Assembly (NCBI GenBank): GCA_905178155.1
Contig: CAJINV010000022.1
Span: forward strand, 527,458-591,457
DNA from: Amoebophrya sp. A120
Taxonomy: Eukaryota > Protista > Dinoflagellata
Length of the DNA stretch: 64,000 nucleotides
Direction: 5' to 3'
Shown: in pieces, positions 19,478 to 57,004 of the stretch
Layout of the letters: each line of letters starts with the position of its first letter
Numbering within the stretch: the stretch's first letter is position 1
The notes under the pieces: generated by a model
The model's input: the letters and a program-made list of their open reading frames with translations, nothing else
Databases searched by the model: none
Told to the model about the DNA's origin: nothing
Made by a program: the position numbers and the translations under genes

Positions 19478-19535
19478 GGCTCACCACGATGATGTTTCGG
19501 TGACGGTGCTGCAGCTCGAGTTTTTTGTTTTTTAA

Positions 19536-20655: not shown

Positions 20656-20923
20656 TATGGATTGCAAAAATGTCTGGGTCTGGAAGGTTGGAACTTGTCA
20701 TGCTAAATCTGAATCAAAATCATGCAAAAATCTGTGTTGCATGATTTGCAAATGCTGTCCACTTTTGATCAAGTTGAGAGGCACTTTCTCATGCCGGATA
20801 GGCATGATAGTGATCTCACGGAATCTGTCATGCTAGGTCCTCCATTACAGATGATGTGGGTCATGGAAAACCTGCATGACAAGTCTAGCAAAGTTCCAGA
20901 CCCAGACATTTTTACACTTGATA
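20656..20923. mobile_element. Introner, family A (outside recognised CDS)
   Basis: TIR; repeat AGAAC/AGAAC. Confidence 0.93.
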
Positions 20924-22450: not shown

Positions 22451-25400
22451 ATGGAGCAGCAAGAGAGCGACGAAGCCTTGCTGCCCTCTTTTGCACCGGA
22501 TGAGTTCTATGGCGATGATCATGTGGCGCAAGGGAAAAGCCATCCCCACCGCAGTTCCCTCTCTCCTCCCGTTGCGACGCGGAAAACAACGCTTTCGAAA
22601 AACCCCCACTGTTCTTCCGGGTCCCCGGAAGATCTCCACGAGCCCCCCGTCCGGCAAAATGAAAATAGCCTGTCGCCAGCATTCTCCTCCAATGCATGCC
22701 ACACAAACGACTCTGCAGAGCGGGACCGACGGCGGCCGCCTGCCACAACAGACGATAACCAGGGCGACGGTGACATCATCTCCGAGGCGGATGAAGCAGC
22801 TCTGGCAGAACCCGCTGGGGCTGTGGCCTCATCACCTCCGTGCGAGGACCGTGCGGTAGCATCTTCTCAGCGGTCGAAAACCTTCTCCATTCACGACCTT
22901 TCCTTCACCATTGGGGATCTGATCGGGCGTGGCGGCTTTGCAGAGGTCTACCAAGCGAAGAGGGACGATAAGAAATTCGCCTTGAAAATTGTTTCCGCAC
23001 AAAATAAGCGTCGTTTGATGCAGTTTCAGCAAGAAGCAGTTTTGCTCTATGGATTGCAAATATGTCTGGGTCTGGAAGAGTGCAAGTTGTCATGCTAGAT
23101 CTGAATCATACAAAATTCTGTGTTGCATGATTACCAATAAAAAGCTGTTCACTTTTGAGAAGGCCGCGAGGCACTTTCTTATGCGGAAAAGGCATGGTAA
23201 AGATCTCACACAATCTGTGATGCTAGGGCATGCATCACAGACCTCACACGTTATGGAAAACGTGCATTACAAACCTGGAAATCTTCCAGACCCAGATATT
23301 TTTGCAGTTGATATGCTCGAGAACCTGACGAAAAAGGACAAGATATCCAGAGGAAAAACGTTCCCGACCCAGAGTTGTCATGCGCAATGGCATGTCTATA
23401 TCTAAAATTTTTCTACTTAACGCAACCCCATGAGAAGCGTTTTTTCATGTTGTCTGGGACTTTGTCATGTCAGAATCAGGATTAGAATACGAAGATGGAT
23501 CGATTTTTTATGCGGCTTTTCTAGCTAAACACGATCACCATCACACTAAAGACCCCAAGCTTGTCATGTGCAACAGCCAAAAGTTCTTGATTTGTGTTGC
23601 AAAGTCCCAATATACTTGACTCTGGGGTGGGGACGTTTGTCCACAGGATACAAGACAGGGAGAAAGCACGTCGTGCACTGTTTTGGCTCTTACTGTGACG
23701 TCGCCAACTTGCGGATCCACATCTTGCTATGCTCTGCAAAAGTATCGTACTCGTACTAATTGCAATCATGCATGACAAATCTTGTTTCTTAGCCAAATCA
23801 GCATTTACAAACTCCATTTCTCCTTCTGAGAAAATTTGTATTGCGATTTGTACTAGTACGTTTCTTTTGCACAGGATACTTGCTGGAATTTGCCGATTGC
23901 GACTTCGAGGCCTATCATCGGAGCTTCGTCACGAAAGTGACTCATGTGCCGACTCTTGAAGATGCCGATCCCGATGCTGGGGCCAGCCCAGGTGGGAGAG
24001 GACCACGACACACCAGAGCCTGTTCACGGAATAAAACGAAATTCTTCATGCCTTTAAACACGATTCTGCATTGCGGAAAGCAGATGGCGGCTGCGGTCGC
24101 CTTTATTCACAGCAAGAACATCGTGCACTTTGATTTGAAGCCCGCAAACTTTCTCATGTTTGAAAACAAGCAGAAAATCAAGCTGTCCGACTTCGGGCTG
24201 GCGAGGGAGGTCGAGCAAGATAAATCCCATATCAGCCGGTTTGGGCAGTGCGGCACAATCTTATACATGGCTCCGGAGGCCTTCCACCAGGGCGAGCAGT
24301 ACGAATCCAGTATGAAAATGAAGCCGGAAACGGATATTTGGTCCCTTGGAATCATACTGTACGCGATGATCTACGAAAAGCCGCCGCACGCGTATTTGTT
24401 CAACCAACCAGGGGGAGGCAATCGGGTGATGTTCTGCATCGTCGACCCTTTCATGGAAATCCAGTATCCGGACAAGTTCTGCGCCTTCACACAAGACATT
24501 TTAGAAGACGGCCTCGCAGATTTCGAAGGCAAGAGGCTGGAGCATTTGCTGTATTTGGTGCAATTCTGTCTCGCACGGGAAGTCGCAGACAGGATCACTG
24601 CCTTTGATTTAGAAAAAGAGCTGGTCGGACTGGAGGTGGTGAGCGAACGCAGGTTGTTGCGGATCGACAACCGAACTGGGGGCGTAGGGGGCGAAGATCT
24701 GTTGCATGGCAAGCAAGGATCAGGGCCAAAGCAAAATGGCACGTCTAATGCGAGGACCCGCACAACAACGGCGGAGGGGTCGGAGTCCTCGGGTTTGTCC
24801 AACAATAGCGGCCGCGATGCTGCTTCCCCTGCGAAGCTAGATTTCCAGTTTCGCACAGCGTTGATTAGGCCGATTCCGGGAAGCACGGCAACGGTGTTGC
24901 ATCGAAAGCACATTCCGGAGGTAGCGGTTTCTCGGTCTGGTTCACGGCCTACTTCGGAAAGCGGATTCATTTCCCCTCCGGAGAAAGCCACCCCTGCGCA
25001 AGAGAGCGAAATATTATCACCAATTGCACCCACCGTGCAACAAGAACAGCACCTTTCAGAATCGATGCTTCGCAGATCCGAGGACGAGGAAGCTGGGAGG
25101 CAGCAGTTGCTGCTACAAGGGAAAATGCCGCCCTCCAATTGTGCAAAAGGCTCCGAACAAGTGGATCTCGATCCGGAACAAGCACCGCTGATCGATACCG
25201 AAAAACAAGACCTATTCGCGGTCGGAAATGGCTCTACGGGACAACACGATGCGGCCGCACCAGACGCTCGTCATGTCGATGCACCTTTCTGGAGCAGCAT
25301 TGCTGGGAAAGCTATCATTTCTGCTCTTCTCCTGGCTATCGGCATTAGCACTGCTGTATCTATCGGAATATTTGGGACAAACACGGCGACGTCGTCGAAT

Positions 25401-27326
25401 TCTGGCGCAGCGAATCAACAACTCAATTTCGGCGGCAACAACGCGTTATTTCCGCCCGGAATACTAAGACCAAATGATATAGTTTTCGTAAAAAATGGGA
25501 ACGGGACCATGTTCGGAGCGACAGGTGGACGAAATGTCGGCGGCAACGGCTACGGGACTTGTAGCTCTACAGACATCCAGCCCGTGGTAGCCAGGCCTCA
25601 TACTGCGTTTTTGCCGCCGTCGAGTCCCAGTTCCTGGAGTCCGGGGCAGGAGATCGAAGCAGGTCATGGGGATGCAGGCAGTCCAAGCAGCCGCCCACAT
25701 GTTGGTGCACAAGAAACAACCACGCAACAAATAAATGCGGCCCGCCCGGCCACGTCAATCGCAGCTCCGCCAGCTGGGATTTCCCTTGGAAATATCGGAC
25801 CAACTGTAGGCTCACCCTCTCCCCCAAATGGCAGCGTGCCTGTCAGCACAGCTGCTCCGTCGGTCGTGCCAGGGGGCTTACGTGTATCGCCAGCACATCT
25901 TCAAGGAAGGACTGCAATCACGCCACAGCCCAGGCAGTCTCCGGCCTCCGAGCCCCCTGCTCCTTCTGCTCCTTCAGTGGTACTGCCGCCAGTAGTACCT
26001 CCTGGTGGAAACGATCCGCACGAACCCTTACCGACCCAACCGGTGGGCGCGTCTTCGGCGCCTCCCTCCCACATCGGAGTCGCGACGACGGCTGTGAGCG
26101 AGCAGTTGCAGACCGCGTTTTCGCCGCCGAGTCCGAGTGTTCTCAGCCCGGGTCAGAGCGGAGACGGAGATGCCGATGCGGGGGGCAACGGAAATGGAGG
26201 TGCTGACGGTGCGGGCACTGGCTTTAATAATAGCAGCAGCGACCTTGGAACTGACAACAGCAATGGTGGCCGTCCGCTATATGATGCACAAGAAACCACA
26301 CAACCAACCACAGCCCCGGCATCGAGCCCCCCTGTTGCAGCTCTCGTATCAGTTGGGAATCATACTGAAACCGGAGAGACCGCCAGCCCTCCTCTCGTCA
26401 ATGGTAACCTGCCTGTCACAGCTGGTTCTGCTGTGGAGGTTCGTGCAGGTTTATCAACAGAACCAGGCACGGGCGATTCTTATCGCGAAATCCTTCGTGA
26501 GATGAATGCACGCAGGTTTATCGAAAATCTCAGGCGCGCGGTGGCTCTCAGGCGCGCTGATGTGCACTGCCGGAGCCGTTGTGGCGGAGCCGGAGGTGCC
26601 AGCAGCGAGCTATATCAGGAAGAGTCTTTGGCAGGGCCAAGCGGAACTTCTCCATCGCTGCCAGCCGGAGCCACGATACTTACTGCCGACTCACCAACAC
26701 GAGAACCGGACGGCCCCGCATCAAACCCACCTGCAGCAGCTCCAGTCCCAGATGGGAATGATATTGGAAACGGAGGAGGTCCTGCTAGCTCTCCTCTCGT
26801 CAATGGTAACCTGCCTGTCACAGCTGGTTCTGCTGTGGAGGTTCGTGCAGGTTTATCAACAGAACCAGGCACGGGCGATGCTGATGACGAAATTCGTCGT
26901 GAGATCGCGCTATGCCGTCCGCGCAAGTTTATCGACAAGGTCAGGCGCGCGCGCGCGCGCCGATCGGGTTCTGATGTGCACTGCCGGAGCCGTTGTGGCG
27001 GAGGTGCTAGCAGCGAGCTATATCATGGCGGCCCTCAGTTTCATGAAGACCCGGTGCAGCGATTCGCGCAGAGGTACACGTGCTCGATCTGTTCGGACTC
27101 CCCACTGCAACTGCCGCAGGAGGTGCAGCAAAGGTTGGGAGCTCCGAGGAACTCCCGCACTCGTGGTCCTGCATACGAGACGAAATCGCTAGCGGTGCTG
27201 CCTTGTGGGCACACCTTCTGTGAGGGTTGCATCGGATACTGGACGCACAATCACCCTAGTTGCGCCTTCTGTCGCTGTAGCATTCCCCGTATGAGAGTGC
27301 ACAAGAACCCCCATTTACTTAAGTAA
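22451..27326 (+). CDS. Kinase paralog 1 (~1378 aa): Mps1/TTK-like Ser/Thr kinase, TM helix, Pro/Ser/Gly stalk, C-terminal C3HC4 RING finger; exons 22451-23047, 23319-23343, 23656-23727, 23884-27326
   Basis: GRGGFAEV, FALK, QQEAVLL, HFDLKPANFL, DFG, GTILYMAPE, DIWSLGIILY; TM AIISALLLAIGISTAVSIGIFG (~25311-25376); CSIC...LPCGHTFCEGC...CAFCR (~27081-27278). Start codon uncertain. Confidence 0.9.
23048..23313. mobile_element. Introner, family A
   Basis: TIR; repeat TGCTC/TGCTC; joins VLL|ENL as in intron-less paralog 3. Confidence 0.95.
23344..23650. mobile_element. Introner, family C
   Basis: TIR; repeat CAAGA/CAAGA. Confidence 0.93.
23728..23878. mobile_element. Introner, family B
   Basis: TIR; repeat CTTGC/CTTGC. 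Confidence 0.94.
26385..27022 (+). repeat. Intragenic duplication (~230 bp x2) in kinase paralog 1
   Basis: PLVNGNLPVTAGSAVEVRAGLSTEPGTGD...DVHCRSRCGG...ASSELY encoded at ~26385-26615 and ~26786-27022. Confidence 0.9.
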
Positions 27327-27736
27327 CATTGTCCCCCGCTTTATGTATCAGTTTGGAAGAAAAGCAGCCGCAACAGAAACAAAGTATAGAATTTTTGTAG
27401 CTTCTGCATGCCAAATACAAATTGAAGTATACTTATGCGCGCGGCCTGTAGTACAACGGATAGATACAATTACTTGGGTTCTCCTGGTCGTGCCCTAATT
27501 CATTATTGTCACACCCATTGATGTATATATAGCGGGGATGTGAAGAGGCTGCACTAGTATGAGTACCTGCAGTTGCGTTTGTCTTGCATGACGACAATAA
27601 AGGTGGGACGATCCCCGGACCGCATGAGGAGTTCATCTTGTGCACTCGGATACCCCGTGCCAAACGTGAACGTGTCGAGCTGAACGACGGTGCCAGCGAG
27701 TTTTACTTTGATCCCTCCTACCATGCGCGCTGTGTT

Positions 27737-27941
27737 TATCCAAGGAAAAAAGTGTAGTGTAAGTGTAACTTTTTTGCAGGAACAGCATCACATGACAGAG
27801 AAATAAACCTGTCATGCGTAGCTAGTAAGCGAAAACACGTCTTAAAATAGCCTTTGACGCATATAATCCAGCATGACAAGTGTAACTGTGTCGCAGCCTC
27901 TGCAAGACAAAGTTACACTTACACAGTTTTTCTCTTGCATA
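27737..27941. mobile_element. Introner, family E (downstream of the paralog 1 stop)
   Basis: TATCCAAGGAAAAAAGTGT...TTTTTCTCTTGCATA; repeat GTGTT/GTGTT. Confidence 0.9.
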
Positions 27942-28619
27942 GTGTTCCACGTTACGAGGCACCACGTGGTAGTGGGCAATACGCAGGCGCTAATCGTTAT
28001 GGGTGTGGCAGGATCAAAATTGACAAAGTCGAAAAATTTGTATATGCATAGAATGTAGGGCACGCGTGGCCTGTGTTGGGGAGCAGGCAAATGAGTCCGA
28101 TTGCAATCCTGCCTGTTTAGGGGTAATACGCAATGTGCTGCCAGAGTAGCATGACAGGAGTAGTCTTCTTTGCCCAAACAGCACGACAGATTGCATTGTG
28201 GTGCTCCCGAATAAATTTGTCATGCGCCGCTTGCAAAGAAACAAACTGAGGCTCCAACTGGTATCGATTTTACACGACATGCATCACAAGTTTTATTTTG
28301 ATTATTGTCAATTTATTCGATTCTGACACTTCCATAATCGTGTTGTGCGCTTGAAATTCAATATCTACAAGCGTGACCACACGGATGAAGTCGAGGGGGC
28401 TCGTTCCCGGGGGCACGTGGAACTGGTGCAGCCGCAGGCGTGCGAGGGTCATCATCGTACTAACAGTGGACACCCCGCACCAGGAAAGACTACATTCACA
28501 CCAAAAGTTGAAATCGAAGAGCGCCGAGCCATTTCGTCAGCGGACCACACCAGCACAACTGAAGATGGGAATGAATTCCATCTAAAGTGGACAAACAGGA
28601 GGGAGCAGGAAGGGTCTGC

Positions 28620-28923
28620 TACTGAGAGGAAAAATCCCCTCTCCCCATATCAAAAATGTGATGCAGATTTGTGGTCACAAATCAGCTTTGTCATGCTAGA
28701 AGGGAAAAGATGCGGACTGTAGTGCTGGGCTGCGTGGGACAGCCGTGCATCTTCAGCATCACAGGAGGCAGCTGGAAGTGGGAAACAGCATAACAAACTG
28801 CCTCCAATCGAGGCCACAACTACGCCTCTTCGCCTTCTAGCAATACAAGTCGATTTGTGTACTCACATACAGCATCACAAATTTCGCTTTTGATATGGGG
28901 AGGGGGGATTTTTCCTCGCGATA
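28620..28923. mobile_element. Introner, family D
   Basis: TIR; repeat TCTGC/TCTGC. Confidence 0.92.
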
Positions 28924-29479
28924 TCTGCGTCTGCTGGCCAGCAGGGCGAGCGCGAGATGACTCTGATAAGACAGATCATGTTCTAGAAAGAGGGTGGGCC
29001 TGCTGGTTCGTTATAAGTACTCGTCACAACCGGAAGTACTTACACCATTCAGATTTATTGTAGGATTTTTACTGGAAGCAATTTAGCATGTGCATGATAA
29101 GCATATCACGTACTTATCTTGACCAAGAACACACTCCTCACTACTACGGCAGGAGATTGGAGCAAAGAACTACGACCAGCTTTTTATTCAATAAGCATCT
29201 TCTACTTTGCTTCGTAAAGAAATATAGGTGTTAAACTTTCAAAAGGATTAGGGCACGGTGGCATATGCAATCATATTTACACATCTCTTCAAAAATGAAT
29301 AGTAAGTGTCTGAGTGCGATCGAGCAATTGGGACAAGGGCAAGGGAGTTCTGATGCCGATGAGGCCACGTGTCCCTACCGAATGGTGGATCAATTACTCG
29401 TCCGCGTCCGCCAACGGCAAGGGCAACGAAGTTCTGAAAGTGCGGTCGCGATACATACGTCCGGTTTACAAGCACGAGA

Positions 29480-30000
29480 CCGGGACGGTAGTGCAGTTAT
29501 TCCTCACTCGAAGTCAGGCCCAGCCTCCACGCTCGCTGTTGCCGCTCCTCCTCCACCCCCTCCCCAGCCACCGGGACTACCGCCGGCCGTAGCGAATAAC
29601 GTGTGGGAAGAGTAGCGGCCTGGCGAAGCGCCTGTTCCAATAACGCTCTCCGCAGAGAGGTCGACACCGAATGCCGCGCAGGCAGACACGAACATTTCGC
29701 ATGTATCGAGCGCAAGCTCAATCGCACCACAGGCAAGTCAAAGTCCTGCCTCGCCTAGTGTTCAATCCGTACCGCCAACAAGTAGCAGGGGTGCACCGAC
29801 CGAAGCCGGACCGGCAGCCGCACCGCCTGCAAACAGGGTTGAGCATGACGAAGAAAGGGGTCTCTGTACGATCGATTAAGCAGTTGCCCACCAGCGGCGG
29901 GCACACAAAATATTTCAAGCGGTCGAACGGCGGCAATATAGAATTGAGTATGATCGAGCCTTGAAAAGATATGAAGCTGCCTGCCAGCGGGGGCGGCAAC
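29480..30000 (+). pseudogene. Decayed copy of the stalk-coding region of kinase paralog 2
   Basis: GSAVIPHSKSGPASTLAVAAPPPPPPQPPGLPPAVANN resembles ~37665-38340 but contains stops and frameshifts. Confidence 0.7.
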
Positions 30001-32715: not shown

Positions 32716-33356
32716 AAATTATTCACTGACCATACATCTCGCCTCACAAGAGCAACCATTCCACCATGGGAGAAGATCTACAATCGCATATTTTCGTGGG
32801 CATATAAAGACCGGATACGAAGCAGCACTGATATTGAAATTTGATCTTTTTTTACCGTACATGTTCTGAAGCTGTTCTATTGTCGGGCATGTGCTCGACG
32901 ATACCGATAGCACACCTTCTATGTGTCAAACATTGGAATTGGAGGGAAACGCATGTGTGTAGCACCTCTATGGGCGGATCAATTGTGATGGATAAGGATA
33001 TCTCTGTGTTCCTTGGCAGCACCTAGGAAATAAAAAGTTTTGTACCCGCATTTCTTTTGATATTATTGTCTGAAGAGCTCGTATGTTGATTCACATTTAT
33101 TTCACCGCCATTATGCACAGCACTGAGTTGAGGTTGAGAGATGGAGAAGTAGTCTGGATGTTATATCATAGCTCGCAGGCCGCAAAGCAGGATGTAGACG
33201 CACACCAAAAATCACCTTATGACGAACACCCTCTCAACGATAAAACCGACGGCCCTGATGGACGTATCGGCAGCGCATGTTCTGCAGGGGCTTCACCCAC
33301 TGGTTATTCTAGCGGAATAGCATGACAAAAAGCCACAGTAGTTCCTCGCAGTCAAC

Positions 33357-36300
33357 ATGGAGATGGAGCGAGATAGCGAAGAGGCCTTACTGCCTCCTTC
33401 TGGACCAGATGCTCCACCGTCGGAGAAGTTTCATGGCGATGATCATGTGGCGCAAGAGAAAAGCCAAAACCACCGCAGTCCCCTTCTTTCTTTTTGGGCG
33501 ACACGAAAAACGACGCTTTCAAAAAACCCTCACAGTTCCGGATCTCCAGAAGATCTCGAGCTCCTTGAACAAAATTCAAATAGCCCGTCGCCGGGCTTTT
33601 CGTCCAATGCATACCACACAAACGACTCTGCAGAGCGGGACCGACGGCGGCCGCCTGCCACAACGGAAGATAACCAGGGCGACGGTGACATCATCTCCGA
33701 GCCGGATGTAGCAGCTCTGGCAGAACCCGCTGGGGCTTTGGCCTCACCACCTCCGTGCGAGGACCGTGCGGTAGCATCTTCTCAGCGGTCAAAAACCTTC
33801 TCCATTCACGACCTTTCCTTCACCATTGGGGATCTGATCGGGCGCGGCGGCTTTGCAGAGGTCTACCAGGCAAAGAGGGACGACAAAAACTTCGCCTTGA
33901 AAATTGTTTCCGCACAAAATAAGCGTCGTTTAATGCAGTTTCAGCAAGAAGCAGTTTTGCTTTATGGATTGCAAATATGTCTGGGTCTGGAAGAGTGCAA
34001 GTTGTCATGCTAGATCTGAATCATACAAAATTCTGTGTTGCATGATTACCAATAAAAAGCTGTTCACTTTTGAGAAGGCCGCGAGGCACTTTCTTATGCG
34101 GAAAAGGCATGGTAAAGATCTCACACAATCTGTGATGCTAGGGCATGCATCACAGACCTCACACGTTATGGAAAACGTGCATTACAAACCTGGAAATCTT
34201 CCAGACCCAGATATTTTTGCAGTTGATATGCTCGAGAACCTGACGAAAAAGGACAAGATATCCAGAGGAAAAACGTTCCCGACCCAGAGTTGTCATGCGC
34301 AATGGCATGTCTATATCTAAAATTTTTCTACTTAACGCAACCCCATGAGAAGCGTTTTTTCATGTTGTCTGGGACTTTGTCATGTCAGAATCAGGATTAG
34401 AATACGAAGATGGATCGATTTTTTATGCGGCTTTTCTAGCTAAACACGATCACCATCACACTAAAGACCCCAAGCTTGTCATGTGCAACAGCCAAAAGTT
34501 CTTGATTTGTGTTGCAAAGTCCCAATATACTTGACTCTGGGGTGGGGACGTTTGTCCACAGGATACAAGACAGGGAGAAAGCACGTCGTGCACTGTTTTG
34601 GCTCTTACTGTGACGTCGCCAACTTGCGGATCCACATCTTGCTATGCTCTGCAAAAGTATCGTACTCGTACTAATTGCAATCATGCATGACAAATCTTGT
34701 TTCTTAGCCAAATCAGCATTTACAAACTCCATTTCTCCTTCTGAGAAAATTTGTATTGCGATTTGTACTAGTACGTTTCTTTTGCACAGGATACTTGCTG
34801 GAATTTGCCGATTGCGACTTCGAGGCCTATCATCGGAGCTTCGTCACGAAAGTGACTCATGTGCCGACTCTTGAAGATGCCGATCCCGATGCTGGGGCCA
34901 GCCCAGGTGGGAGAGGACCACGACACACCAGAGCCTGTTCACGGAATAAAACGAAATTCTTCATGCCTTTAAACACGATTCTGCATTGCGGAAAGCAGAT
35001 GGCGGCTGCGGTCGCCTTTATTCACAGCAAGAACATCGTGCACTTTGATTTGAAGCCCGCAAACTTTCTCATGTTTGAAAACAAGCAGAAAATCAAGCTA
35101 TCCGACTTCGGGCTGGCGAGAGAGGTGGAGCAGGATAAATCCCATATCAGCAGGTTCGGGCAGTGTGGAACGATATTATACATGGCGCCCGAGTATTCAT
35201 TGCAAAAGTATCGTACTAGTAGTAATCTTCGCATTACAAATTGGCTCGGCATGACAAATGGAATTTGTGATGCTGTTTTGCCTTGGGATGGGGATTTGTA
35301 ATGCATGACTGCGAAGATCACTACGAGTACGATACTTTTGCACAGGATACCGAGGCTTTTCATCAAGGAGAGCAATACGAAGCAAGCATGAAAATGAAGC
35401 CGGAAACGGATATTTGGTATCAAATGTAAAAATGTCTGGGTCTGGAAGAATGCATGTTTGTCATGCTTTTCTGGCATGACTCTTAAATCTGTCATGCAAG
35501 TTACCCAAGAGCTCCATTTTTCTGTGATGCAGAAACGCAGTTTGTCATGCAGAATAGGCAACACCTAGAAGCTCAGAAACTTGTGATGCTGAGCCAGCAC
35601 TTGTTGCCTCCTCATGATACGCCACCCAGCATCACAAGTTTCCAGACCCAGACATTTTTTGATTTGATATTTGGTCGCTTGGGATTATTCTCTACGCGAT
35701 GATCTACGAAAAGCCGCCGCACGCGTATTTGTTCAACCAGCCAGGCGGTGGGAATCGGGTGATGTTCTGCATCGTGGATCCGTTGATGGAAATCCTATCC
35801 TGTGCAAAAGTCTCGTACCCGTAGTAAAAGTAATTGCAATTTATGCATTACAAATATCCATCCCAAGGTAAAACAGCATCACAAATTCCATTTGTCATGC
35901 TAACGTAATTTGTAATGCAATTTACTACTGGTACGATACTTTTGCAATCCATAAATCCAGTATCCGGACAAATTTTGCGCTTTCACACAAGACATTCTGG
36001 ATGATACTCTCGCGGACTTCGAAGGACAAAGGCTCGAGCATTTGCTGTATTTGGTGCAAGTCTGTCTCGCACGGGAAGTCGCAGACAGGATCACTGCGGT
36101 TGATTTGGAGACGGAACTGGTTGGACTGGACTTGGTGCGCGAACGAAGCTTGTCGCGCATCGACAGGCAAGGATCAGGGCTAAGGCAAAATGGCACGTGC
36201 GATTCGACCGCCACCACCTCTACTACAGCCTACTGGTCGGCATCTTCAAGAGATGCGTCCGTCAGTAGCAGCCGCGATGCTGCTTCCTCTACTGCGAACC

Positions 36301-42300: not shown

Positions 42301-45300
42301 GGGTGGTCTGGGGCGCTTCGGGGTTTGTGATTTTGGTGCAGCTTTCGCAACGTGACAGGTTCTGAACAGAAATGTCGTCTTTGGGATTGCGTGGTCAAAG
42401 GTGTGTGCTGACCTTCGCTGCCTTTAATGCGATAAAGATTTTTGTATATGAAGACCAGACCGAGACCAGCTACCGCTAGCGCCACAAACCCGGGCTCTAC
42501 TTCTAGACCCCAACATATTACGATTTGCAATGCATAGAGGAATTGGCAGCAGATGCAGACGGTACTCGGAAAAGGGGTTGCGCAGAGTGTTTATTGCCCG
42601 CTGAGGAGTTTTTACAATCTCAACTGTTACACTTTTTTCTCATTTTGATTGCATGAAGCGTTTGTGTGGGGCTGCGGTGACGCATTCATTTTTTGTCACT
42701 GGTACGCAGGACAAGTTCTAATGTCACAAAAAGCTGGAAGTCGTAGACCCTACCGCAAAATTGTAGATGCAAGACACAACTGGCGCCAGGTTCCGATTAG
42801 AGTGCAAATGCGTCACAAACTTTCAGCTTTATGTAATTTTTGGATAACAGTGAGAGCTTGTAAACGCCTGACCAGGTTATAGTGTTCGAGACTGCTTTCT
42901 ATCAGAAAAGATCGAGGACTTCATGCTGGTATGCATTGCAAGTATGGCTGGGTCGGTAAGATAGAATGCAATTGCAAGCAACCTGCATATACAATTGTGC
43001 ATTGCGAAGGAGAATGTGAATCTGTGATGCGCGAAGTGGGCTATGACAATGATTTCTGTATAGTGTGTTCCGCAAAAATGCGGTTTCTCCAACTCGTTGC
43101 GCAGGTTTCGTTGAAGTCTTCGGATACCGGAGGCCATTTCGCATAGCGAACGTGGCGTTTTTGCCAGTTTCCCGACCCAGACATATTTGTCCTGAATAGC
43201 CGGAGACTTTGCGCGCCCAGTTGGAGAAAATGCAATTGATGTTGTTGTAGGCAATGCAAAGAAGTATTGTACTCGTAGTGCTTGCACGACAAGCGCTTTC
43301 TGCGTGAAAGATGGCGTCTGTCATGTAGAGTCAAGGCCTTAGAAAAACAGATTGTAAGGACCAAATGTACGACTACAATACTTTTGCACAGGATAAGTTG
43401 TCGCACTTCGGCGCCGGCGTCTTTCGATTCTACATCGATTCTGCAAGACCAGAACGCCTTCGCTTTCACAGATCGCCGCAAGGGCAAAAAGTAGGTGACT
43501 GGGTGCAACAAAGGATCACGCAGGCAAAAAGCAACGTGGAAAATTTTTTGCGTTTAGGCGTATCCGTTGGCACCATGGCCAACCTGGAAGACCTACCGCT
43601 TGAATCCAGGACAGCCGAAGTTCGAGTGTTCCTGGAGGCAGCAAGTTTTAGGAAAATGCAGCCAAAAAGGCTTTTCACGCAGGCTGCAAATGGGAGTGCG
43701 ACCAATGGTGTCTATGCAAGGCGAAACCGAATGCATCATCGTACAAGTAAAAATTGCAGCACATACATTTTTTCATGAGTGTGCTCAAAATAAAAGACGT
43801 CGCAGTTTGTCATGCAATGTTTTTCAGGTACTAAGTAGAAGTGCAAATGTGTCATGCACGAAGCTTGCAATTTTTACGAGCACGATATTCATATTTTTCG
43901 GAGCATACTGTTTATATACGCTCTCGGGAATTCGCAAATAGTGACATTGCACAAATGGACTTCGGAACGTATTTCGGCGAGCTCATGGGTAGTCGACCTG
44001 GTGGTGCCTTGCTCTGGCTGGTCGACCAGTGGATCGAAAGCGTGACTCCAGGCAACCGAAGTCGACGTCTAGTGCTCCGATCAGCTGCAGAAGCGCTCCG
44101 CCTTGCCGAATATTTGTCAGGCGAAAAACCGCCGGCGGAGCTGCAACGGCTCGCAGCAGAAGAGGTCGTGATTAAGTGGGTACGCTGGAGTACCACTCAG
44201 GCAAGACCTTATGTGCTACGCGAATTTAAGGACTTGTCGAATCGCGATCGAGAATTCCTGTCTCAGTATTTTCGAGCCGCCCTGGAAACAGGAGGAGGTG
44301 GCGAACACTTTATTGGACGCTTTGCAAGACAACAGCATCGCACTCGTGAAAATTGCACCGCATACAATTTTTTCTCAAAATCCGCTTGCCAGAATGAAAA
44401 AACGCATTTGTCATTATGGTAATGTAATTGTAATTCTGCAGCTAGGAATAGGGAACCGATACCGGAATCCACATTTTGCATGCATTGTTGCAATGGACAC
44501 GGGGGCGATACCATTTTTTCGAAGGATACTATTCTGCCACGAGATCTGGCCGCGAAGCTGGAGCGTCTCGTCTATCCAAGTCTGGACGGGAGGCTCCGCC
44601 GGCTTGTAGAAGAGTGGATCGAAAGCGTGGTGCTGCCCTACAACGAACGCCGGACAGAAGGACGTCTAGTACTCCAATCGGCCGAAGAGGCGCTTCGCTT
44701 TGTCACATACTTATCGAGATTCACTGGGGGCGAAGGGGAACAAGAGGAACAAGAGGAACAAGAGGAACAAGAGGAACAAGAGGAACAAGAGGAACAAGAG
44801 GAAGAGGAAGACCGTGAGACGGAGCTGGCGGGCCTTCAGACAGAGCTGCAAGAGCTGGCGGCAGAAGAGGCCGCAGGGGAGCAGCAGGGAAAAGAATCTG
44901 AAATTGGACTTAGTCTTTTTCCGGCTTCTCCGTTTCTTTTTCTCCAAGATGCAGATGGTCGCCCTTTTCCCCTAAACCAGAATGGCCTTCTCGCAAGTAA
45001 AGATGGCGAAGAAGATCGGCTAACCAGACGCACACCAGATGGCATAGTGCGCTTCTTCAGCAAGCGGGGCCCGCCGGGCCCGGGGGAGGACGCACGCCGG
45101 TACCTTCGATCGAGCTACCGGACGGTCCCGGAGGACGTCGTAGCCCCTGGGGTCAAGCGCCTAGTGGAAGTTCTCTTCGGCCGGGAACATCTCGAAAATA
45201 GCCCGCTGGAGATGCAATTGCGAGAGGAATTCGCATATTGTGAGGAAAACAAGTCCCGCCCCCTTTCTAGTATGCTCACAACGGATATCTGTGACAGTGA

Positions 45301-48001: not shown

Positions 48002-51000
48002 ATGGAGCAGCAAAATGAGGAAGCGTTGCTTCTTCCTTTTGGCGGGCGACCACCCGACGAAGGCTGTCGTGGTGATTCGGAAAAAGACTGCAGTAGCAAG
48101 CTGCCGCCACCGCACTCAGCCACACGTCAAAGAACAACGTCTTCGGAGGACGAGAGCCAACATCTCACTTCTCTTCTACAGGAACCAAATGGGAGGTGTT
48201 CTCGGGCCGCGGAAGAAGATGAAGACGAATTTCCGCGTCCCGCTGCACCAAAAGACGTCGACACAGGCAAACCTGGCGCGCGTCGAGCGGGACACCAGGC
48301 AGAGGAACAAATCGCGCCACCTTCCGCTGCGGGTCTACTTCAGCCGGCCAGCGCGGGCAATGGAACAAGAAGGGCTCCTCTTACGTCTAGTACCTCCCAG
48401 CAGCGCGACACAAAGACCACCTTCTCCAATATCGAAAAGAAAAACCGCGTTTTAGTGTAGGTGTCTTCAGCAGGTGACAGCACGACAAATTCGTTCTGCA
48501 TGACAGTGCAGTCCTGTCATGCACGGCTAGCACGTGCAAACACGACGTAAGAAAAGAACACACCGTGGCTAGTAACCAGCATGACAGAGACAAGTGTAAA
48601 CTGTTTTATATTTTCTGCATCGCAGACTTACACTTACAGACCTTTTTTGTTCCATATCCATCCACGATCTTTCCTTCACGGTGGGCGAACTGCTCGGCCG
48701 CGGCGGCTTCGTATGGATTGCAAAAGCCTATCGCCCTAGTAGAGGAAATTGCATTACAAATTCGTTCAGAAGAAAAATGAAATTTGTAATGCTGAACTTG
48801 GAGTAAGAAACTAGATCTGTCATGTATAAATGCAATTCACGCAACTACTCGGTGGGCTTTTACCGAATGCATACTTTGCCGAGGTTTACAAGGCGACAAG
48901 GGGGGAGAAGAATTTCGCGCTCAAAATCGTCTCCGCCCAGAACAAGCACAAGTTGCTGCAGTTCCAGCAAGAGGCGGTTCTGCTTGAAAACTTGACGAAA
49001 AAGGACAGACGGGGAAGAAAACATGTTGTCCACTGCTTCGGCTCCGAGTGTGACGTGGCGAGTTTGAAGATTCACATTTTGCTGGAATTCGCGGACTGTG
49101 ACTTCGAAGCCTACCATCGGAGTTTCGTGACGAAAGTCACATCGAATCCGCCCCCAACTGCGGCGGCCAACGGATTATTCGGTGCCAACGGTGCGGGAAG
49201 CAGAGACTCTTCCAGCTGTTCTAGAGGTTCAAGAAAAACGAAGTTCTTCATGCCTTTCAACATTATTCTCCATTGCGGGAAGCAGATGGCGGCTGCGGTT
49301 GCTTACATCCACAGCAAGAACATCGTGCATTTTGATTTGAAGCCGGCGAATTTTCTCATGTTTGAAAACAAGCAGAAAATCAAGCTGTCCGACTTCGGGC
49401 TAGCCAGGGAAGTGGAGGAAGATAAATCCCATATCAGCCGGTTTGGGCAGTGCGGCACGATATTATACATGGCTCCCGAGGCTTTTCATCAGGGAGAGCA
49501 ATACGAAGCAAGCATGAAAATGAAGCCGGAAACGGATATTTGGTCCCTTGGGATCATACTGTACGCGATGATCTACGAAAAACCGCCGCACGCGTATTTG
49601 TTCAACCAGCCGGGGGGCGGAAACCGGGTGATGTTCTGCATTGTGGATCCGTTGATGGAGATCCTATCCTGTGCAAAAGTATCGTACTCGTGCAAATGCA
49701 AGTCTTGCATTACAAATCTTGTTCTTAAAGGCAGATCAGCATTTCAAATTTTATTTCTCATGCTGAGGAAATTTGTGATGCATTTATACGATTGCGATAC
49801 CATGCTTTTGCAATCCATAAATCCAGTATCCGGACAAGTTCTGCGCCTTCACGCAGGACATTCTAGACGATACTCTCGCGGACTTCGAAGGACGAAGGCT
49901 CGAGCATTTGCTGTATTTGGTGCAAGTCTGTCTCGCGCGGGAAATCACAGAGAGGATCACTGCTTTTGATTTAGAAAAAGAGCTGGTCGGCCTGGAGATG
50001 GTGGGAGATGCGGTGTTAGCGTCTTCTTCTACTTCTTGCGGCACTTCTTCTTCCCTGCAGTCTGCCGCTTGCGACACTGGGGACCACCACCAGCTGTGGG
50101 AAGGCCACAATGTTGTCCTGTCTCGGGCCAGTGCCGACGCTATAAAAATGCAGTTAATGCAAGATGGACCAGGCGATCTCGATCTGACTCAAAATCGAAA
50201 TCGTGCATCCAATTCCACCGGCACCACAACCGCGGGTGATGGGTCATCTGCTCCTTCCGGAGGTTCCATCGACAACAGTAGGAGCACCGCCGCTTCTTTT
50301 TGTGCAAAATTAAACCTGGATAAAAACTTCAAGTTCCGCACAGCATTAGTACGTCCGATCCCGGGAAGCACGGCGACGGTGTTGCATCGGAAACACATTC
50401 CGCAGGTACAAGTAGCCGTCCAACAAGTGGCTGGCTCTGGATCATCTTCGGCAGGAATGAATGTTCATAGCGGGGTAATATCATCATCTGCCGTGGTGAC
50501 ACCTTCCACCAGCTTCAAAATTACATCGCTGGAAACCGCTCCAGCGCAGGAGCGGACGATTGCGCCGCCGGTGGTGGCGGTTGAAGAAAAGTTTTTGAAT
50601 GGGAGGCTCGAGGAATCTTCCGCACAAGAAGAAACCACTAGGCAGCCACCAGAGCTGGACCTGGTGGAGCTTCTGCCGCAGGATATTACAGTGTCCCCGC
50701 TCGTCGGTGGTGGTGCACGCTCCGATGTAGATCCGAATTTCGACCTCGACGAGGAAGGGCTCGTTGGCAGAAAAAACGAATTGGACAACATTCCGACCAC
50801 CGAAGTGGATGAGGCTTCTAAAGTTGATGTGCCAACACCAACAGCTGCAACATTTTGGACCAGCGTCGCTGGACAAGTGCTTATCTCGGCCCTTATCCTG
50901 TCTATCGGCATAGGCGCAGCTGTATCTATCGGCATATTTGGAACAAACACCGAAGTTGTACGAGATGCAGGAGGTGCTTCGGGCGCCGCGAATCAGCAAC

Positions 51001-54000
51001 TGAACTTTGGAGCGGGTTGGGGCAATGGTTTGTTTCCACGACCTGCCGGAAACGGTATGGTTTTCGTCAAAAACGCGAATGATTTCGATGGTAATGAAAC
51101 GACCAATACTGGTGGTAGTCCTGACGGAACATTAAACGGAACGTCTAGTGGTCCTACAGAATCTCTGCAGCCCATACTACCGAACCCTCACACTGCGTTT
51201 TTGCCCCCGAGTCCGAGTGCTCTGAGCCCAGGAGTGGTGGTGTTCGGAGATGGAGGCGTAGGTGGCGGCGGAGATGGCGGGTTTGACGGTGGCGCTGGCG
51301 GTAGCGACGGTGGTGGTGGCCCGGCAACACGACCAAATACCCCCGTTGCCCCTCGTCCCGGTGGGAGTAATTATCCCACTGGAAATTATACCGGAGGTGG
51401 AACATCACCAGGCAGCTCTCCACCTCTCGTGCGTGGCAACCTGCCCGTCCCCGCAGCTGCCCCTGCAATGGTTGCTACGAGTTTAATATTGCCAGTAGGA
51501 CCAAAAGCTGGCGCCGGCGGAATGATGCCACAGCCGAAACAACGTCCAGCTCGTCCCACACCTTCCGTTCCGCCTTCCGCTCCAGCAGTTGTGCCGCCAG
51601 AAGTTAGCAGTACACCAGGAGACGGTCCGCGAGGAGTATCACCGGCGGGCCAACCAGTCGTACCACCATTGCCCTATGACGGGTTGGTCACGGCGTCGTC
51701 GACGGGGAATACGACTAGCACCTCGCCGTCATCGCCAAGTACCACGACGCTACCGACGGCTGCACAACGCCCTCCGAGTACTAGTACGCCGATGCAGTCA
51801 ACAACCCAGAATGCTCCATTGCCAACAAGTACTCGAACTGCATCGCCACCAAGAGGCGCGCAGGTGCAACAGGATCCACCGCCGGCATTTTTACCACAAG
51901 AGCTTGCTGCAAATGGAATAGCGAGTGAGCCGCCAAGACGAAGAGACCCAGAGGGAGTAGAGCGATCTGCCGTTCCTCAACCGACACGGGACGAAACTCT
52001 GACAGAGCCGAGTCGCAATGGAAATGGCCCGCCAGCCGGAGGAAGCACTGGCCCTAGTACCAATGCAGCCCTGCAAGAAGCGGACCCCCTGTGGCAGGGC
52101 GGCAACGAGGTGCGACCGGGAGGAGCCCCGGTCGGGACATCAGGGCCACAAGCTGAAGAGCGCCACACAGAAGTACCTCGCCAACTACTGGCGGCTCAGA
52201 ATATCAGGAGCGGTACAACAGCACCGCCCCAGGTCGAAGCTCCGAGTTCAGCTCGAAGTCCGAGTGAGGGACGAGATTCCAATTCCCGTAGAACTACTGC
52301 GTTGGAGCAGCAGACGGTAGTAGAGCACGGCACTAATTCCCCACCGTCCACTATCCAAGAAAAAAACATTGTAGGTGTAACTTTTTTGGAGGAACAGCAT
52401 TACAAATTTGTCTGGCATGACAGCAAAAACCTGTCATGCGCAGATAGTACGTGAAAACGCCCTTTATTGGACCCTACGACGCATGCCAAGCATGACAGAC
52501 GCAATCATCTTGCAGGTTGCGCATCACAAATTTACACTAACAACGTTTTTTGCTTGGATATCCACCAGCCAAGAACCCCCAGGAACTACAGCAAGAGGTC
52601 CTCCGCGCAGGCAGCTCACTATCAAATGCAAAAATGTCTGGGTCTGGAAGATTGCGAGATTTGTCATGCATATTTCGGATCACCATCACGCAAATGGCGT
52701 CTGATGCAGGCAAAAGCATCACAGGTTTTGAGCGCGCCTCGTGATGCCTGTCCCGCATGAGAAACTTCCTACTTGCGTGCCAAGAAATGGACAGCTTTTG
52801 GCGCTCATGCAACACAAATTTTTGTGTGTTCCAGAGTTTGCATCACAAGTTCCAACCCTTCCAGACCCAGACACTTTTACATTTGATACTCACCTTGGCT
52901 CCGCAAAGTTTCGCCGTGCAGGTCGACCCGAATTCTGATAATTCGCAGGCGGGCACAGTCTATCCTGAGTAAAAACGTACCCACACCAGAGTTGTAATGC
53001 AGATTTGCAAAGACAGGAAGATTTGTAATGCGCATCCCCGCCATGAGAGCCATTTCCAATCGTGTTTTGGAATTTGTGATGCTGTGAACAGGATGAGCAG
53101 ATGAATCTGTGATGCGGCTGCACTTGCTAACCTGCACTACACTGCATAGCGCAACTTGTCATGCGTGACTCACAAAGCTCCTAGGTTTGTGTTGCAAAAT
53201 CCCCATCCTGACTCTGGTGTGGGTACGTTTTTGCTCAGGATACAGTCTCCACTGCGTTTATCGAGCCATCAGGCCCAACATCTCCAAGGTCGGCTTGTTC
53301 CTTCGCAGCCCCGCCGCGGCCGACTGTTGAAAGTGCTGGTAACCGGCGCCGTGTGCTGACAGTGAGTTTACGCCATGAGCAAATATAGTATCGTACTTGT
53401 GTGGTCTGTGTGAATTGTACTACTGATGCATGTTTTTTGCAGCTACAGAGAAATTCTTTTCCACTGCCCTGTGTTTCACCACCACGACCACCAGTGTCAG
53501 TCTTCCTTATTGCCACCAACATTTTCAGAACACAATTTACGCTAAAGGACGATATATGAGCTTGTGATGCATAGACGCGATGTAGCGAAAGCGACGTGAA
53601 TATCCAGCCGGCGGTGGTGCCAGCGGGTTGTGGTACTGGAGGAAGCTCGGGCTCCTCGGGCGTCCAACCCACAGTCGTGCAGACGCCTGAACCACCACTG
53701 GAAGTGGCAGGGCGACATGTTGGTACGAATACTTTAGCCGCGCGAAGACCACCGCCCATGGGTCAGCCTACAGCCGAAACCGCAACAAGTGTTCTGGGGG
53801 GTGGACAGAATCTTGTTCTCGAGGGGGTTCAACATCAACAGCCACCGATCGACTATGCTGTCGCGCCGGGTCGTTGTTCAGTTGTGACCACAGGCAGTGC
53901 TGAGCAAGCAGTGGATGCCGGGGAAAGATTCTTGCAACCGAGAATTATGAATGTTGTCCCGCCGGTGGGGACTCCGCCTGAAGCAGAAGCCAGTTGTAGC

Positions 54001-57000
54001 TCATCAAGTCTAGTGTCAACACCGGCTTGTTCACTACCACCAACCGACTCTGCTGCGTCCGCTCCAGGTACTATAGCTCCGCGCGGAGGAGTACTAGTAC
54101 TGGAACCTGCATCCGCATCGGGAGGACCCCCAGCCACTTGCGAGGAAGCTACAGTGGGTGGTGGTGGTCTTTTCCCGGCACAAGGAGGACCTGATGGTGG
54201 CCGCTTCCCTGCGCAAGGAGGACCCGACGGTGGCTGCTTCCCTGCGCAAGGAGGACCCGATGGTGGTGGTGTCTTCGCAGTACAGCAGTCTTCCGCGGCT
54301 GATAACAGCAGCACCGTCGGGGACGAGCAAAGTAGTACTACAGCTGGTGAAGCGAATGTTTTTGCGACAGTGCTGTCTACAACACGACAGGAAGATGAAG
54401 TAGAGGCGCCTGCAGTGCGCCACCAGGACGACCACGACACAGAGCCGCGTAGGCGACCCAGCTGTGATGGCCCAGGTCCGGGCGACCTCGTGACCTTCGC
54501 CAATTTGCAGACAATTTTTCTTATCACACGATGAAAAAGCGTTCCATGTTTTGCGCCTTGTCAGGCTGGAAAAGCATTGTCATGATATATGCACCATTGC
54601 CATTTTTGGTGCCTGACGGACGGAGTGGTTAAAACTTGCTCCACTGTGCGAAGAAAAGACTCATTTATACTTGACTCAGATTTGTATTGCTCTACTGATG
54701 AATTGATGGCCCCCGCTGCTGCGTCATCAAGACAGAAATAGAAATTTCGGCACAGCAACAAGCGAAACGCAAAGGAGAAGGTAGCGCCTAAGTACTTCTT
54801 TTGAAAAAAAACGCTTCTCGCGGAAGGTGGTGGACGAACCAAAACTCAGCGCTTTTTCAAGCGATACCGCAACGCGATCTAGTAAGGCGCGCTATAGCGA
54901 TTCCAGCCTTCCGCGCAGAAGTCGGTAATGCCATCGGGAATTGGCACCAGATGCGAACCGCGCTCGGAGAAGAAGTTGCGAAGGAGTTGAAACGCTCGTT
55001 TCTAGCAGAAGAAATGGACGACTTCATGGCGGAACTGCTGCGCGAGCAGCTGCACAAAATGCAAGTTCTGCAGCTGTCAGAAGGTAGTACCAGTTTAATC
55101 GGCTCTGGTGTAGTCGCTCAAGGGGCAGCTGGGACGCAAATTACCGTTCCCGCGGAAGTGTACTATGATTCTGCACGTGCACGTTACAGATTATTATACG
55201 ATATTACGGAAGAAAGCGGCCGTCGTCGCTGTCACACGACCACATCGCCGGAAGGTCAGAAGTATGAACTGCAAAAGTATCGTACTCGTATAAATGCATG
55301 ACAAATTCCCTCAGCATGAGAAATAAATTTTGTAATGCGGATTTACCTTGAGACAAAAATTTGTAATGCATGATTGCAATACGAGTACGATACTTTTTCA
55401 CAGGATAAGAAGATAGCCGAGTGGGTGGAAGAAAAGATCAAGCAGGCAAGAGAGAAAATAGCCGAGGCGAGAGCAGTATCAAATGCAAATCTGTCTGGGT
55501 CTGGAAGAACGAAGCAACTTGTCATGCTAAATCTGAATCATGTGGAAATCTGTGTTGCGTGATTGCCAAAAGCTGTCTACTTTTGACCTGATCGAGAGGC
55601 AGTTTCTCATGCAGGATAGGCATGAGAGAACTCTCACAGAATCTGTCATGCGATGTTCTACATACCAGACAGCATGGGTCATGGAAAATCTGCATGACAA
55701 GTCTACTGGCATTCTCCCAGACCCAGACACTTTTGCAGTTCATAAGCAGCAGGGGAAATTCAGAACCCTGCTGAAGTACTGGCTTTCCTGGCCGCCGGAG
55801 CGGGTCGTGCGACAAGTGCCGGCAGGACAAGCCTCGACAATCGGGCAGAGGAAGGAGGTGACGTAGAATTTCACCCTGAATCCGGAGCCCCCACCCCAGC
55901 AGCTTCTGATGTGCTGCTCTACGTGCCGCCGGTAGTTCTATCTGAGAGGCTCGCAGGGCTGCTAGAGCAATTTGCCCAAGCAGAGATCATGCGAGACGAT
56001 CGAGGCGTTCTACTGGGCGGAAGAAATTATGTGCTCCAATCAGCGGAAGAGTCCCTCCGCTTCGCGGAATACCTGTCTGGAACTGCACGGCCGCCAGAGG
56101 TGCAACGGGCCGGAGAAGTTGTTGACGCAAAGGCACGGAGGGACGGACAAGAACACCTGAATGAAGGTGGTATCAAACTAGAATTAAGGTGCCCGAGCCT
56201 GAGAATCTGATTAGGCATCAAAGCCGTGCTGCAAATCTATCTCTGCGGCAGTATGTATCAGCATCGTGATTGTTTTCGGCTTAGAATCTGAAACCACGTA
56301 GATTTGCGCACGATGAACGAGGTTGCAATCATTCCAAAAAACTACTGCATTCAATTTTCTCCAATGCATCAAAACTGTTCATTTTCTTGGGGAGTACGGC
56401 ACCTTTTTTCATTTCTATACCCTGGACCTCCTTCTACCGTTTCGCGCAAGTCAGCCTCCTACCCGGCCTCAGGCACCTCTTGAGCCTTCTCTTCTACTCT
56501 GGGACGAACAATGATCTCACGATGCTTGGGCATCAAAGAACATCAAGGGATGTAAAATTACGAGCAGAATTCGAAGCACAATGGGCACCACAACTATTGC
56601 GCATGATTTACACACTCGATAAGGGCGGTGGGAGGTTTCCGTGGACCAACATCGCACCGAAGAATAATCGTCATGCTCCTGCACGATCGAGCGGAATATT
56701 AACGGGGGCACGACAAGCAGGAGGTTATTCATCTAGCCAGAGAGGTGACCACACCTCGGGATCAGGATCTACTTCGTCGGGGTCATCTTGTTCGTCGTCC
56801 TCTGGCCGACCTGTACCCCGAGCTGCGGCGGATCATGGTTGTTCCGGAGGTGATCATGCAGAAGTGAGCCGCCCCGCCCCACACGCGGATGAACAAGACG
56901 CAAGCCACGCTTCAGGATCACGAAGCGAATTTTCACAAGGAAATCCAAACCACGAGCATCGCCCGAGGAACTACGAAGCGGTGTTTGTAGAGGAGGTTGA

Positions 57001-57004
57001 TTGA
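48002..57004 (+). CDS. Kinase paralog 3 (>2000 aa, ~11 introns): Mps1/TTK-like kinase, TM helix, long stalk, unknown domain shared with paralog 2
   Basis: Kinase motifs; TM VLISALILSIGIGAAVSIGIFG (~50877-50942); C-terminal GNWHQMRTALG...GQKIAEWVEEKI...VLQSAEESLRFAEYLSG. Junctions near 53365-53590, 54522-54800 and 56171-56390 and the 3' end are unresolved. Confidence 0.75.
48430..48656. mobile_element. Introner, E-like (paralog 3 only)
   Basis: TATCGAAAAGAAAAA...TTTTTTGTTCCATA; repeat TCCAA/TCCAT. Confidence 0.88.
48712..48873. mobile_element. Introner, family B (paralog 3 only)
   Basis: Repeat CTTCG/CTTTG; joins GGF|AEV. Confidence 0.9.
49665..49819. mobile_element. Introner, family B
   Basis: TIR; repeat GATCC/AATCC. 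Confidence 0.93.
52352..52560. mobile_element. Introner, family E
   Basis: TATCCAAGAAAAAAAC...GTTTTTTGCTTGGATA; repeat TCCAC/TCCAC. Confidence 0.92.
52620..52888. mobile_element. Introner, family A
   Basis: TIR; repeat CTCAC/CTCAC. Confidence 0.93.
52961..53242. mobile_element. Introner, family C
   Basis: TIR; repeat CAGTC/CAGTC. Confidence 0.93.
55263..55407. mobile_element. Introner, family B
   Basis: TIR; repeat AGAAG/AGAAG. Confidence 0.93.
55477..55744. mobile_element. Introner, family A
   Basis: TIR; repeat AGCAG/AGCAG. Confidence 0.93.

Follow-up and report, generated by a model that had tools for sequence, protein, structure and literature searches.

Three tandem kinase genes of Mps1/TTK type

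Here, we describe three protein kinase paralogs that lie in tandem on the + strand of contig C22 of Amoebophrya sp. A120, a parasite of algae, within a window (the whole stretch of DNA analyzed) of 64,000 nucleotides that spans C22:527458-591457. Positions follow window numbering unless another contig is named. Each paralog comprises an intact Mps1/TTK-like kinase, a conserved motif, one transmembrane (TM) helix and a repeat stalk rich in Pro, Ser, Thr, Gly and Ala. The Pfam domain Pkinase (PF00069) scores above its gathering threshold in all three, and the catalytic motifs (Gly loop GRGGF, FALK lysine, HFDLKPANF, DFG, APE) are intact in each; HFD stands in place of HRD, at a site where TTK has HSD. 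Past the kinase, the motif F[R]TAL[IV]RPIPGSTATVLHRKHIP is found at 24849-24917 (paralog 1), 36312-36380 (paralog 2) and 50334-50402 (paralog 3), and a single strong hydrophobic helix (Kyte-Doolittle ~2.3) at 25311-25376, 36786-36851 and 50877-50942, respectively. Both elements occupy equivalent positions in the three genes. This common layout had been proposed in a first-pass annotation of the sequence, and the Pfam matches, motif coordinates and hydropathy bear it out. Spliced genes were searched exon by exon, joining being limited to a local frame check of the paralog 2 kinase exons.

Several lines of sequence comparison support the idea that these kinases derive from Mps1/TTK, a likeness to which the first-pass annotation had noted. 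In searches of the PDB, TTK is the top match (E 1e-25 to 5e-29), about nine orders of magnitude ahead of the other solved kinases; the next are ULK3, Aurora, PLK, Chk1 and MELK, at ~1e-16 to 1e-20. The alignment to TTK takes in the TTK-type activation-segment/P+1 insert and the IVDPxxEIxYP stretch, and database matches outside Amoebophrya are annotated Mps1, mph1 or TTK. A maximum-likelihood tree groups the Amoebophrya kinases in one clade (91/89), with canonical Mps1 (91/90) as its sister group and with the TLK/AMPK outgroups (99/97), a thin set of three sequences, standing apart. Several canonical Mps1 database matches contain an N-terminal TPR/Mad3-BUB1-I-like region (PF08311), which Pfam detects neither in the first exon of the three paralogs nor in the proteins of the family. 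The strongest genomic hit of a canonical-type Mps1 query lies elsewhere, at C67:2741-3768 (- strand; 54% identity, E 1.6e-55), in an open frame of 815 aa. We take this locus as a candidate gene for an ordinary, soluble Mps1 in A120, beside which the membrane family seems to exist.

Most introns of the locus are non-canonical. For transcript evidence we relied on contigs from two runs that behave like cDNA, here called RNA-like, the RNA label being a guess supported by splice joints alone; coverage is thin, and the placement of contigs covered paralog 2 past its kinase exons. The RNA-like joints 39665→39882 and 41827→42209 belong to introns that start N-TAT, end ATA-NNNN and carry inverted terminal repeats, and on our reading such introns of these + strand genes begin 1 nt ahead of TAT and extend 4 nt past ATA. 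Besides the inverted terminal repeats, the introns show short direct repeats spanning their boundaries, and these features match the introner elements described for the Amoebophrya genome (Farhat et al. 2021, PMC7789003). Searches with blastn locate introner copies at 23047-23313, 33970-34231, 38994-39257 and 55484-55747, and also at 35417-35560 and 52619-52669. The three paralogs carry this one introner family in different introns, the USP loci of C18 and C22 contain it too, and RNA-like depth over it is 2-3 times that of neighboring exons. Because of this introner background, the paralogs differ in intron positions.

Ubiquitin-system modules in paralogs 1 and 2

In paralog 1, kinase and ubiquitin ligase domain share one open frame, so that their fusion is certain at the DNA level. 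Exon 1 (22451-23047) encodes the N-terminal region, the Gly loop (22925-22939), the FALK lysine (22976-22993) and the end of helix C (QQEAVLL), and matches Pkinase positions 2-52. It is followed, over 23048-23879, by three non-canonical introns around two mini-exons (~23319-23344 and ~23652-23727) to which peptides of the annotated A120 protein P0001 were mapped; the first of these introns holds the introner repeat 23047-23313. The main exon (23880-27326) then runs as a single open frame through the kinase C-lobe (HFD 24126-24152, DFG 24189, APE 24267), the motif, the TM helix, the stalk, a tandem duplication and the RING. The corresponding open reading frame (ORF), 23841-27326, has 1161 codons and holds C-lobe, TM helix and RING together. 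Pfam places zf-RING_2 at aa 1113-1145 of this frame (29.9 bits against a cut-off of 27.3), and the C3HC4 RING named in the first-pass annotation, at 27081-27272, retains all eight zinc ligands in the spacing C-x2-C-x37-C-x-H-x2-C-x2-C-x10-C-x2-C. The best PDB matches of this RING are those of RNF141, RNF126 and CBL, and, to judge from the sequence, the Ile of C-x-I-C and the Trp of C-I-G-Y-W would occupy the usual E2-contact positions. The best database match of the whole frame is P0001 (98% identity), annotated as one gene with Pkinase and zf-RING_2; this model runs on in small exons to ~28983. Within the main exon we also note an internal tandem duplication of ~400 nt at 26403-26879 (copies 26403-26477 and 26805-26879), each unit closing with a basic helix and HCRSRCGG. 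Roughly one of these units is treated like an intron and left out in the public model P0001.

Paralog 2 has a more interrupted structure. Its kinase exons span 33357-35957 (HFD 35041-35067, DFG 35104, APE 35182), and the kinase looks broken in a raw ORF list because three additional non-canonical introns interrupt it (35193-35353, 35417-35673 and 35795-35957). In the local frame check, cutting these introns restores a frame colinear with paralog 1. The next exon (35958-38450) carries the last kinase helix, the motif, the TM helix and the stalk repeats, with RNA-like contigs on parts of it. A loose RNA-like contig end before 36003 was considered for paralog 2 and set aside, as it belongs to paralog 3.

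The USP module of this gene, at 38751-40533, consists of three exons (38751-38993, ~39258-39665 and 39882 onward) and ends with MLLYKK at 40516-40533. All the boxes of a USP are located: Cys at 38760-38816, QQD at 39376-39396, His at 40300-40368 and the WRHFDD stretch, which holds the aspartate position, at 40399-40416. Searched exon by exon, UCH/USP (PF00443) matches the ORF 39838-41910 over profile positions 140-241 (60-63 bits), and the Cys box exon matches UCH profile positions 1-40 (E 0.0056). The presence of a USP domain, also claimed in the first-pass annotation, is confirmed. Two introns divide the module. The introner 38994-39257 is removed in frame by the annotated partial model P0140, and the intron 39666-39881 by the RNA-like joint 39665→39882, likewise in frame. 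A further loose contig end, at 39120, proved uninformative, lying within the repeated introner and having no match in the window. The USP exons are spliced and transcribed in RNA-like contigs and joined there to exons downstream. In the same exon as the end of the USP, a tail (40534-41827), covered by RNA-like contigs, contains a further stalk repeat copy at ~40607-40950. The stalk repeat thus flanks the USP on both sides; in BLASTP, 37542-38450 and 40417-41826 align with 43% identity over 117 aa (E 4e-13). The gene then continues over 41828-44725, with an intron at 41828-42208 followed by exons for a C-terminal region common to paralogs 2 and 3. A contig with a loose end at 41827 resumes at 42209, and both spliced and unspliced forms are seen at 41827. 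The partial protein P0117 spans this junction and maps to 42211-44725, and in addition to paralog 3 at 54825-55262 and 56022-56138. The common C-terminal region has no relative in Pfam or the Atlas. In paralog 2, it includes a helical unit (WIESV ... RLVL.SA.EALR) in two tandem copies, 43898-44329 and 44438-44725, a unit likewise without Pfam or Atlas relative.

How is the USP connected to the kinase? A predicted intron at 38451-38750 has canonical GT..AG ends and brings the stalk and USP frames into exact register. In the USP frame there is a stop at 38736-38738 and no ATG between that stop and the catalytic Cys; the USP hence depends on an exon further upstream. RNA-like depth is zero across 38416-38750, one contig begins exactly at 38751, and both flanks are covered. 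Two other solutions were rejected: the junction 38415→38751, which the contig ends suggest, is out of frame, and a non-canonical N-TAT...ATA-NNNN intron would end at 38696 or 38700 and retain the stop at 38736. From this gene structure we infer that the USP of paralog 2 is, with good probability, fused to the kinase gene by way of the stalk-to-USP splice. The claim of the first-pass annotation that kinase and ubiquitin domain share one gene thus holds outright for paralog 1, and for paralog 2 as a deduction from gene structure.

On sequence comparison, both modules are copies of modules found elsewhere in the A120 genome, inserted in the stalk repeat array. The USP (38747-40416) has 85-88% nucleotide identity to a USP at C18:129.6-131 kb. 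Homology begins at 38747, 4 nt before the proposed acceptor site and at the acceptor AG itself, and extends across the intron 39666-39881, which both copies have; the introner 38994-39257 is a new acquisition of paralog 2. The copy lacks the 5′ exons of the donor gene, and its three exons and long tail are still open. For the RING, paralogs with 67-71% identity occur at C2:4055006 and C2:4068975, and stalk-like remnants lie downstream of it at 29442-29863. These genomic paralogs, and the location of both modules inside the repeat array, agree with the earlier suggestion that ubiquitin domains have been swapped into the family. The donor-type USP of C18 occupies the middle of a very large gene with many exons, rich in coiled coils (C18:124001-144000, - strand), and the N-terminal half of this USP matched nothing in the PDB. 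Two more USP paralogs stand in tandem at C22:628 and 645 kb (contig positions). As for the kinase portions, paralogs 1 and 2 (22275-24278 versus 33198-35193) are 92% identical over the 5′ 2 kb, introns included, and ~73% identical in the stalk. This mosaic pattern suggests that the kinase 5′ half was recently copied from one gene to another, by partial duplication or by gene conversion.

Paralog 3 appears to be the plain form of the gene. Its main part (48002-52454) encodes the N-terminal exon(s), the kinase (48878-49663), the motif, the TM helix and the stalk. An intron at 48711-48877 splits the Gly loop, and paralog 3 lacks the three 5′ introns of paralogs 1 and 2 but has others, a difference that implies intron gain or loss among the three genes. 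Exon sequence of paralog 3, 49839-49868, is found in a spliced RNA-like contig. Further downstream, 53596-56138 probably represents its 3′ exons, to judge from a low-complexity ORF (53596-54534) and a region homologous to the C-terminal part of paralog 2. Pfam finds nothing besides the kinase in the paralog 3 ORFs, neither RING nor USP, in line with the first-pass annotation. Beyond the kinase genes, the window contains a Ty1/copia-type retrotransposon on the - strand, with an ORF of 1139 aa at 57541-60960 (RVT_2, 134 bits; weak integrase and SH3 matches). Upstream of it on the same strand is a gag-like ORF of 466 aa (61443-62843) with no Pfam match.

The wider kinase family and its membrane topology

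The first-pass annotation described a family of three. Three tandem members are indeed present, but a much larger family had been missed: the paralog 1 kinase piece has at least 45 matches in the 115.5-Mb A120 assembly, mostly with no recognizable tail domain. The window genes belong to this Amoebophrya-specific expanded kinase family. Long open-frame members lie on C7 (two), C10, C2 and C18, and some ten copies at 48% identity on C1, C9, C24, C4, C13 and C6. In the tree, the window paralogs group with the C10, C18 and C7 members, and the ~48% copies probably fall in another subclade, which shares with the window genes the kinase type, the single-pass arrangement with the kinase first and the long stalk; it is the window paralogs that carry the RPIPGS motif and, two of them, a RING or USP. 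Every long frame or protein examined, including those of AT5.2 and MMETSP Ameob2, has one strong TM helix 300-650 residues past the kinase. The tails beyond it range from ~20 residues, as in the tail-anchored relatives AT5.2 P0004 and MMETSP P0009, to >1500. In the long tails of other family members Pfam recognizes nothing besides the kinase; the exception among those examined is AT5.2 P0115, whose tail past the TM helix contains a discoidin (F5/8-type C) domain. P0115 and P0009 (AT5.2 and MMETSP Ameob2) represent the same kinase-TM gene, as a discoidin gene model of 1457 aa and a tail-anchored transcript form of 775 aa; the two could reflect alternative 3′ ends or a modeling difference. Among the database matches, no RING- or USP-bearing ortholog was found in other Amoebophrya strains. 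In A120 itself, the small contig C27 has family kinase matches at ~14958-27332 (+ strand, one of them at 27030) and a USP match at 40343-40777 on the same strand, which may be a second kinase-USP pair.

Taken together, these data are best explained by an Amoebophrya-specific family of single-pass, Mps1-derived kinases, certain members of which have captured ubiquitin modules. We give this explanation a probability of roughly 0.6. In paralogs 1 and 2, the stalk repeat array would have received copies of pieces of other A120 genes, which then turned into exons, yielding kinase-TM-stalk-RING and kinase-TM-stalk-USP-stalk-C-terminal products, respectively, with paralog 3 retaining the plain form. 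The proteins would be built with the kinase first: a variable N-terminus lacking a signal peptide, the kinase, the RPIPGS motif, one TM helix, the repetitive low-complexity stalk and a variable C-terminal part.

Such a layout has consequences for topology. Hydropathy reveals no hydrophobic N-terminal segment, and hence no apparent signal peptide, although a dedicated predictor was not run; nor is there a second TM-grade segment, the remaining hydrophobic patches being at or below 1.7 (Kyte-Doolittle), proline-rich and, in paralog 1, charged. With no signal peptide and a single TM helix some 700 residues into the protein, this helix should act as an internal signal anchor. The already folded kinase would then remain in the parasite cytosol, and the stalk with its RING or USP would cross to the exoplasmic side, ending up at the cell surface or inside a secretory compartment. 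The first-pass annotation had likewise put kinase and ubiquitin domains on opposite sides of the membrane, and the lack of any second segment above 1.7 upholds that expectation. Also in agreement with a kinase-inside orientation, the N-side of the helix bears Lys, Arg and His and its C-side flank is uncharged, and the discoidin domain behind the TM helix of P0115 is of a usually exoplasmic type. On balance, we slightly favor a topology with the kinase inside and the RING/USP tail outside. If so, any ubiquitin-directed activity could meet only substrates beyond the parasite's own cytosol. Either the RING and USP meet host material, or the topology is not the default one, or the modules are functionless passengers.

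Competing explanations and significance

A number of observations weigh against the explanation we prefer. At the gene level, no RNA-like record bridges 38450/38751, the public annotation splits the 3′ half of paralog 2 into the partial models P0140, P0116 and P0117, and the ratio of nonsynonymous to synonymous substitution (dN/dS) of the paralog 2 USP against the C18 copy is 0.50, which indicates only mild constraint. Two raw RNA-seq runs had zero reads on the stretch, an outcome that amounts to no test. At the level of topology, N-x-S/T sequons following the TM helix, which the first-pass annotation had taken as evidence for a translocated tail, show no excess over shuffled versions of the regions concerned, and that argument falls away. 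Some family members have basic residues C-terminal to the helix, so the orientation may not be uniform. Moreover, RING and USP enzymes need cytosolic ubiquitin, E1/E2 and reducing conditions, which makes an exoplasmic site biochemically odd; we know of no substrates or cofactors for ubiquitin enzymes on the exoplasmic side. The unbridged junction and the fragmentary gene models would also fit a USP outside the kinase gene, either a 5′-truncated, decaying copy of the C18 type or a separate gene with a small unrecognized first exon, in which case only paralog 1 would be a true kinase-ubiquitin fusion. Homology to the donor does start within the C18 coding sequence, with the N-terminal exons of the parent missing, and a short ATG-led ORF at 38516 could in principle supply a start. 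We nevertheless regard a separate USP as unlikely. The three USP exons and a further tail of ~430 codons are all open, the new introner within the USP is removed in frame, dN/dS is 0.5 rather than ~1, and the interval in which a private first exon would lie (38416-38750) is the one with zero RNA depth. The module is also embedded between stalk repeats that are followed by the C-terminal region of the family.

It is also conceivable, though improbable in our judgment, that kinase and RING or USP lie on the same cytosolic or nucleoplasmic side within the parasite, the helix tethering a module of kinase and ubiquitin ligase or deubiquitinase to an internal membrane. One such site would be the nuclear envelope, as a kinetochore anchor in dinoflagellate-type mitosis, and this would fit an Mps1-derived kinase, since Mps1 is a kinetochore kinase. 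Ubiquitin enzymes are known to work only where ubiquitin, E1/E2 and ATP occur, the cytosol is where plant KEG and other RING-kinase fusions are active, and the tail-anchored P0004 and P0009 show that relatives of these proteins can end just past the membrane. A same-side arrangement has to contend, however, with the single TM-grade segment (the weak second patch of paralog 1 being proline-rich and charged), with tails of 600 to 1500 residues, which behind an internal signal anchor are normally translocated, and with the discoidin domain of P0115. The size, tandem duplication and fast evolution of the family also set it apart from core mitotic machinery, and C67 provides a canonical-type Mps1 candidate outside it. 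Less probable still, the RING and USP may be recent neutral passengers of exon shuffling in a fast-evolving low-complexity tail, with the proteins acting through kinase and TM helix alone. The lack of RING/USP orthologs among the database matches from other strains, the scarcity of recognizable tail domains in the family and the mild constraint on the USP would all be expected of passengers. Speaking against neutrality is the preservation of all eight RING ligands, of the Ile and Trp at the putative E2-contact positions and of every USP box, despite 20-35% protein divergence from the genomic paralogs.

If the tail does face outward, as we slightly favor, the RING or USP could be displayed with the stalk on the surface of the intracellular trophont, or be released, so as to face host cytoplasm or nucleoplasm and add ubiquitin to host proteins or remove it, host ubiquitin editing being an idea of the first-pass annotation. 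We offer this as speculation and consider it doubtful. An equally tentative extension is that the Mps1-derived kinase signals on the parasite side, which would make these proteins inverted receptor kinases with an ectodomain that is enzymatic and directed at the host, diversified as modules were shuffled into a repeat stalk.

Comparison with known systems brings out what is distinctive about this family. Canonical Mps1/TTK is a soluble spindle-checkpoint kinase. The A120 kinase domain is closest to it, in the activation-segment/P+1 insert and IVDPxxEIxYP stretch as well as in its sister position in the tree, but the A120 family is TM-anchored after the kinase, exists in dozens of copies and has long low-complexity tails and no TPR region detectable by Pfam. 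Like plant KEG and the U-box kinases, paralog 1 combines a kinase and a ubiquitin ligase domain in one polypeptide; those proteins are soluble or peripheral cytosolic and have unrelated kinases with no TM helix between the domains, unlike the A120 proteins. Plasmodium FIKK and Toxoplasma ROP kinases offer a parallel as lineage-specific, tandem, fast-evolving kinases of an intracellular alveolate parasite. They carry export or secretion signals and the kinase itself reaches the host, whereas the A120 kinase lacks a signal peptide and should remain in the parasite. Type I receptor kinases are similarly single-pass, the membrane separating their kinase from a variable domain. In the A120 proteins the order is inverted: the kinase is N-terminal, there is no signal peptide or N-terminal ectodomain, and the variable side consists of ubiquitin-system enzymes. 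None of the papers searched mentions Mps1-derived membrane kinases, or a kinase set apart from a RING or USP by a TM helix, and the A120/A25 genome paper mentions neither "kinase" nor "ubiquitin". The kinase-TM-RING/USP domain layout appears to be undescribed.

Public annotation fragments these kinase genes. Regardless of topology, the locus provides a clean case of domain capture, in which gene fragments were inserted in a repeat array and then exonized, all of it in a genome where introns, too, are mobile. Should it prove true that the tails face outward, the family would represent a new route for a eukaryotic parasite to the host ubiquitin system, as well as a new receptor layout.

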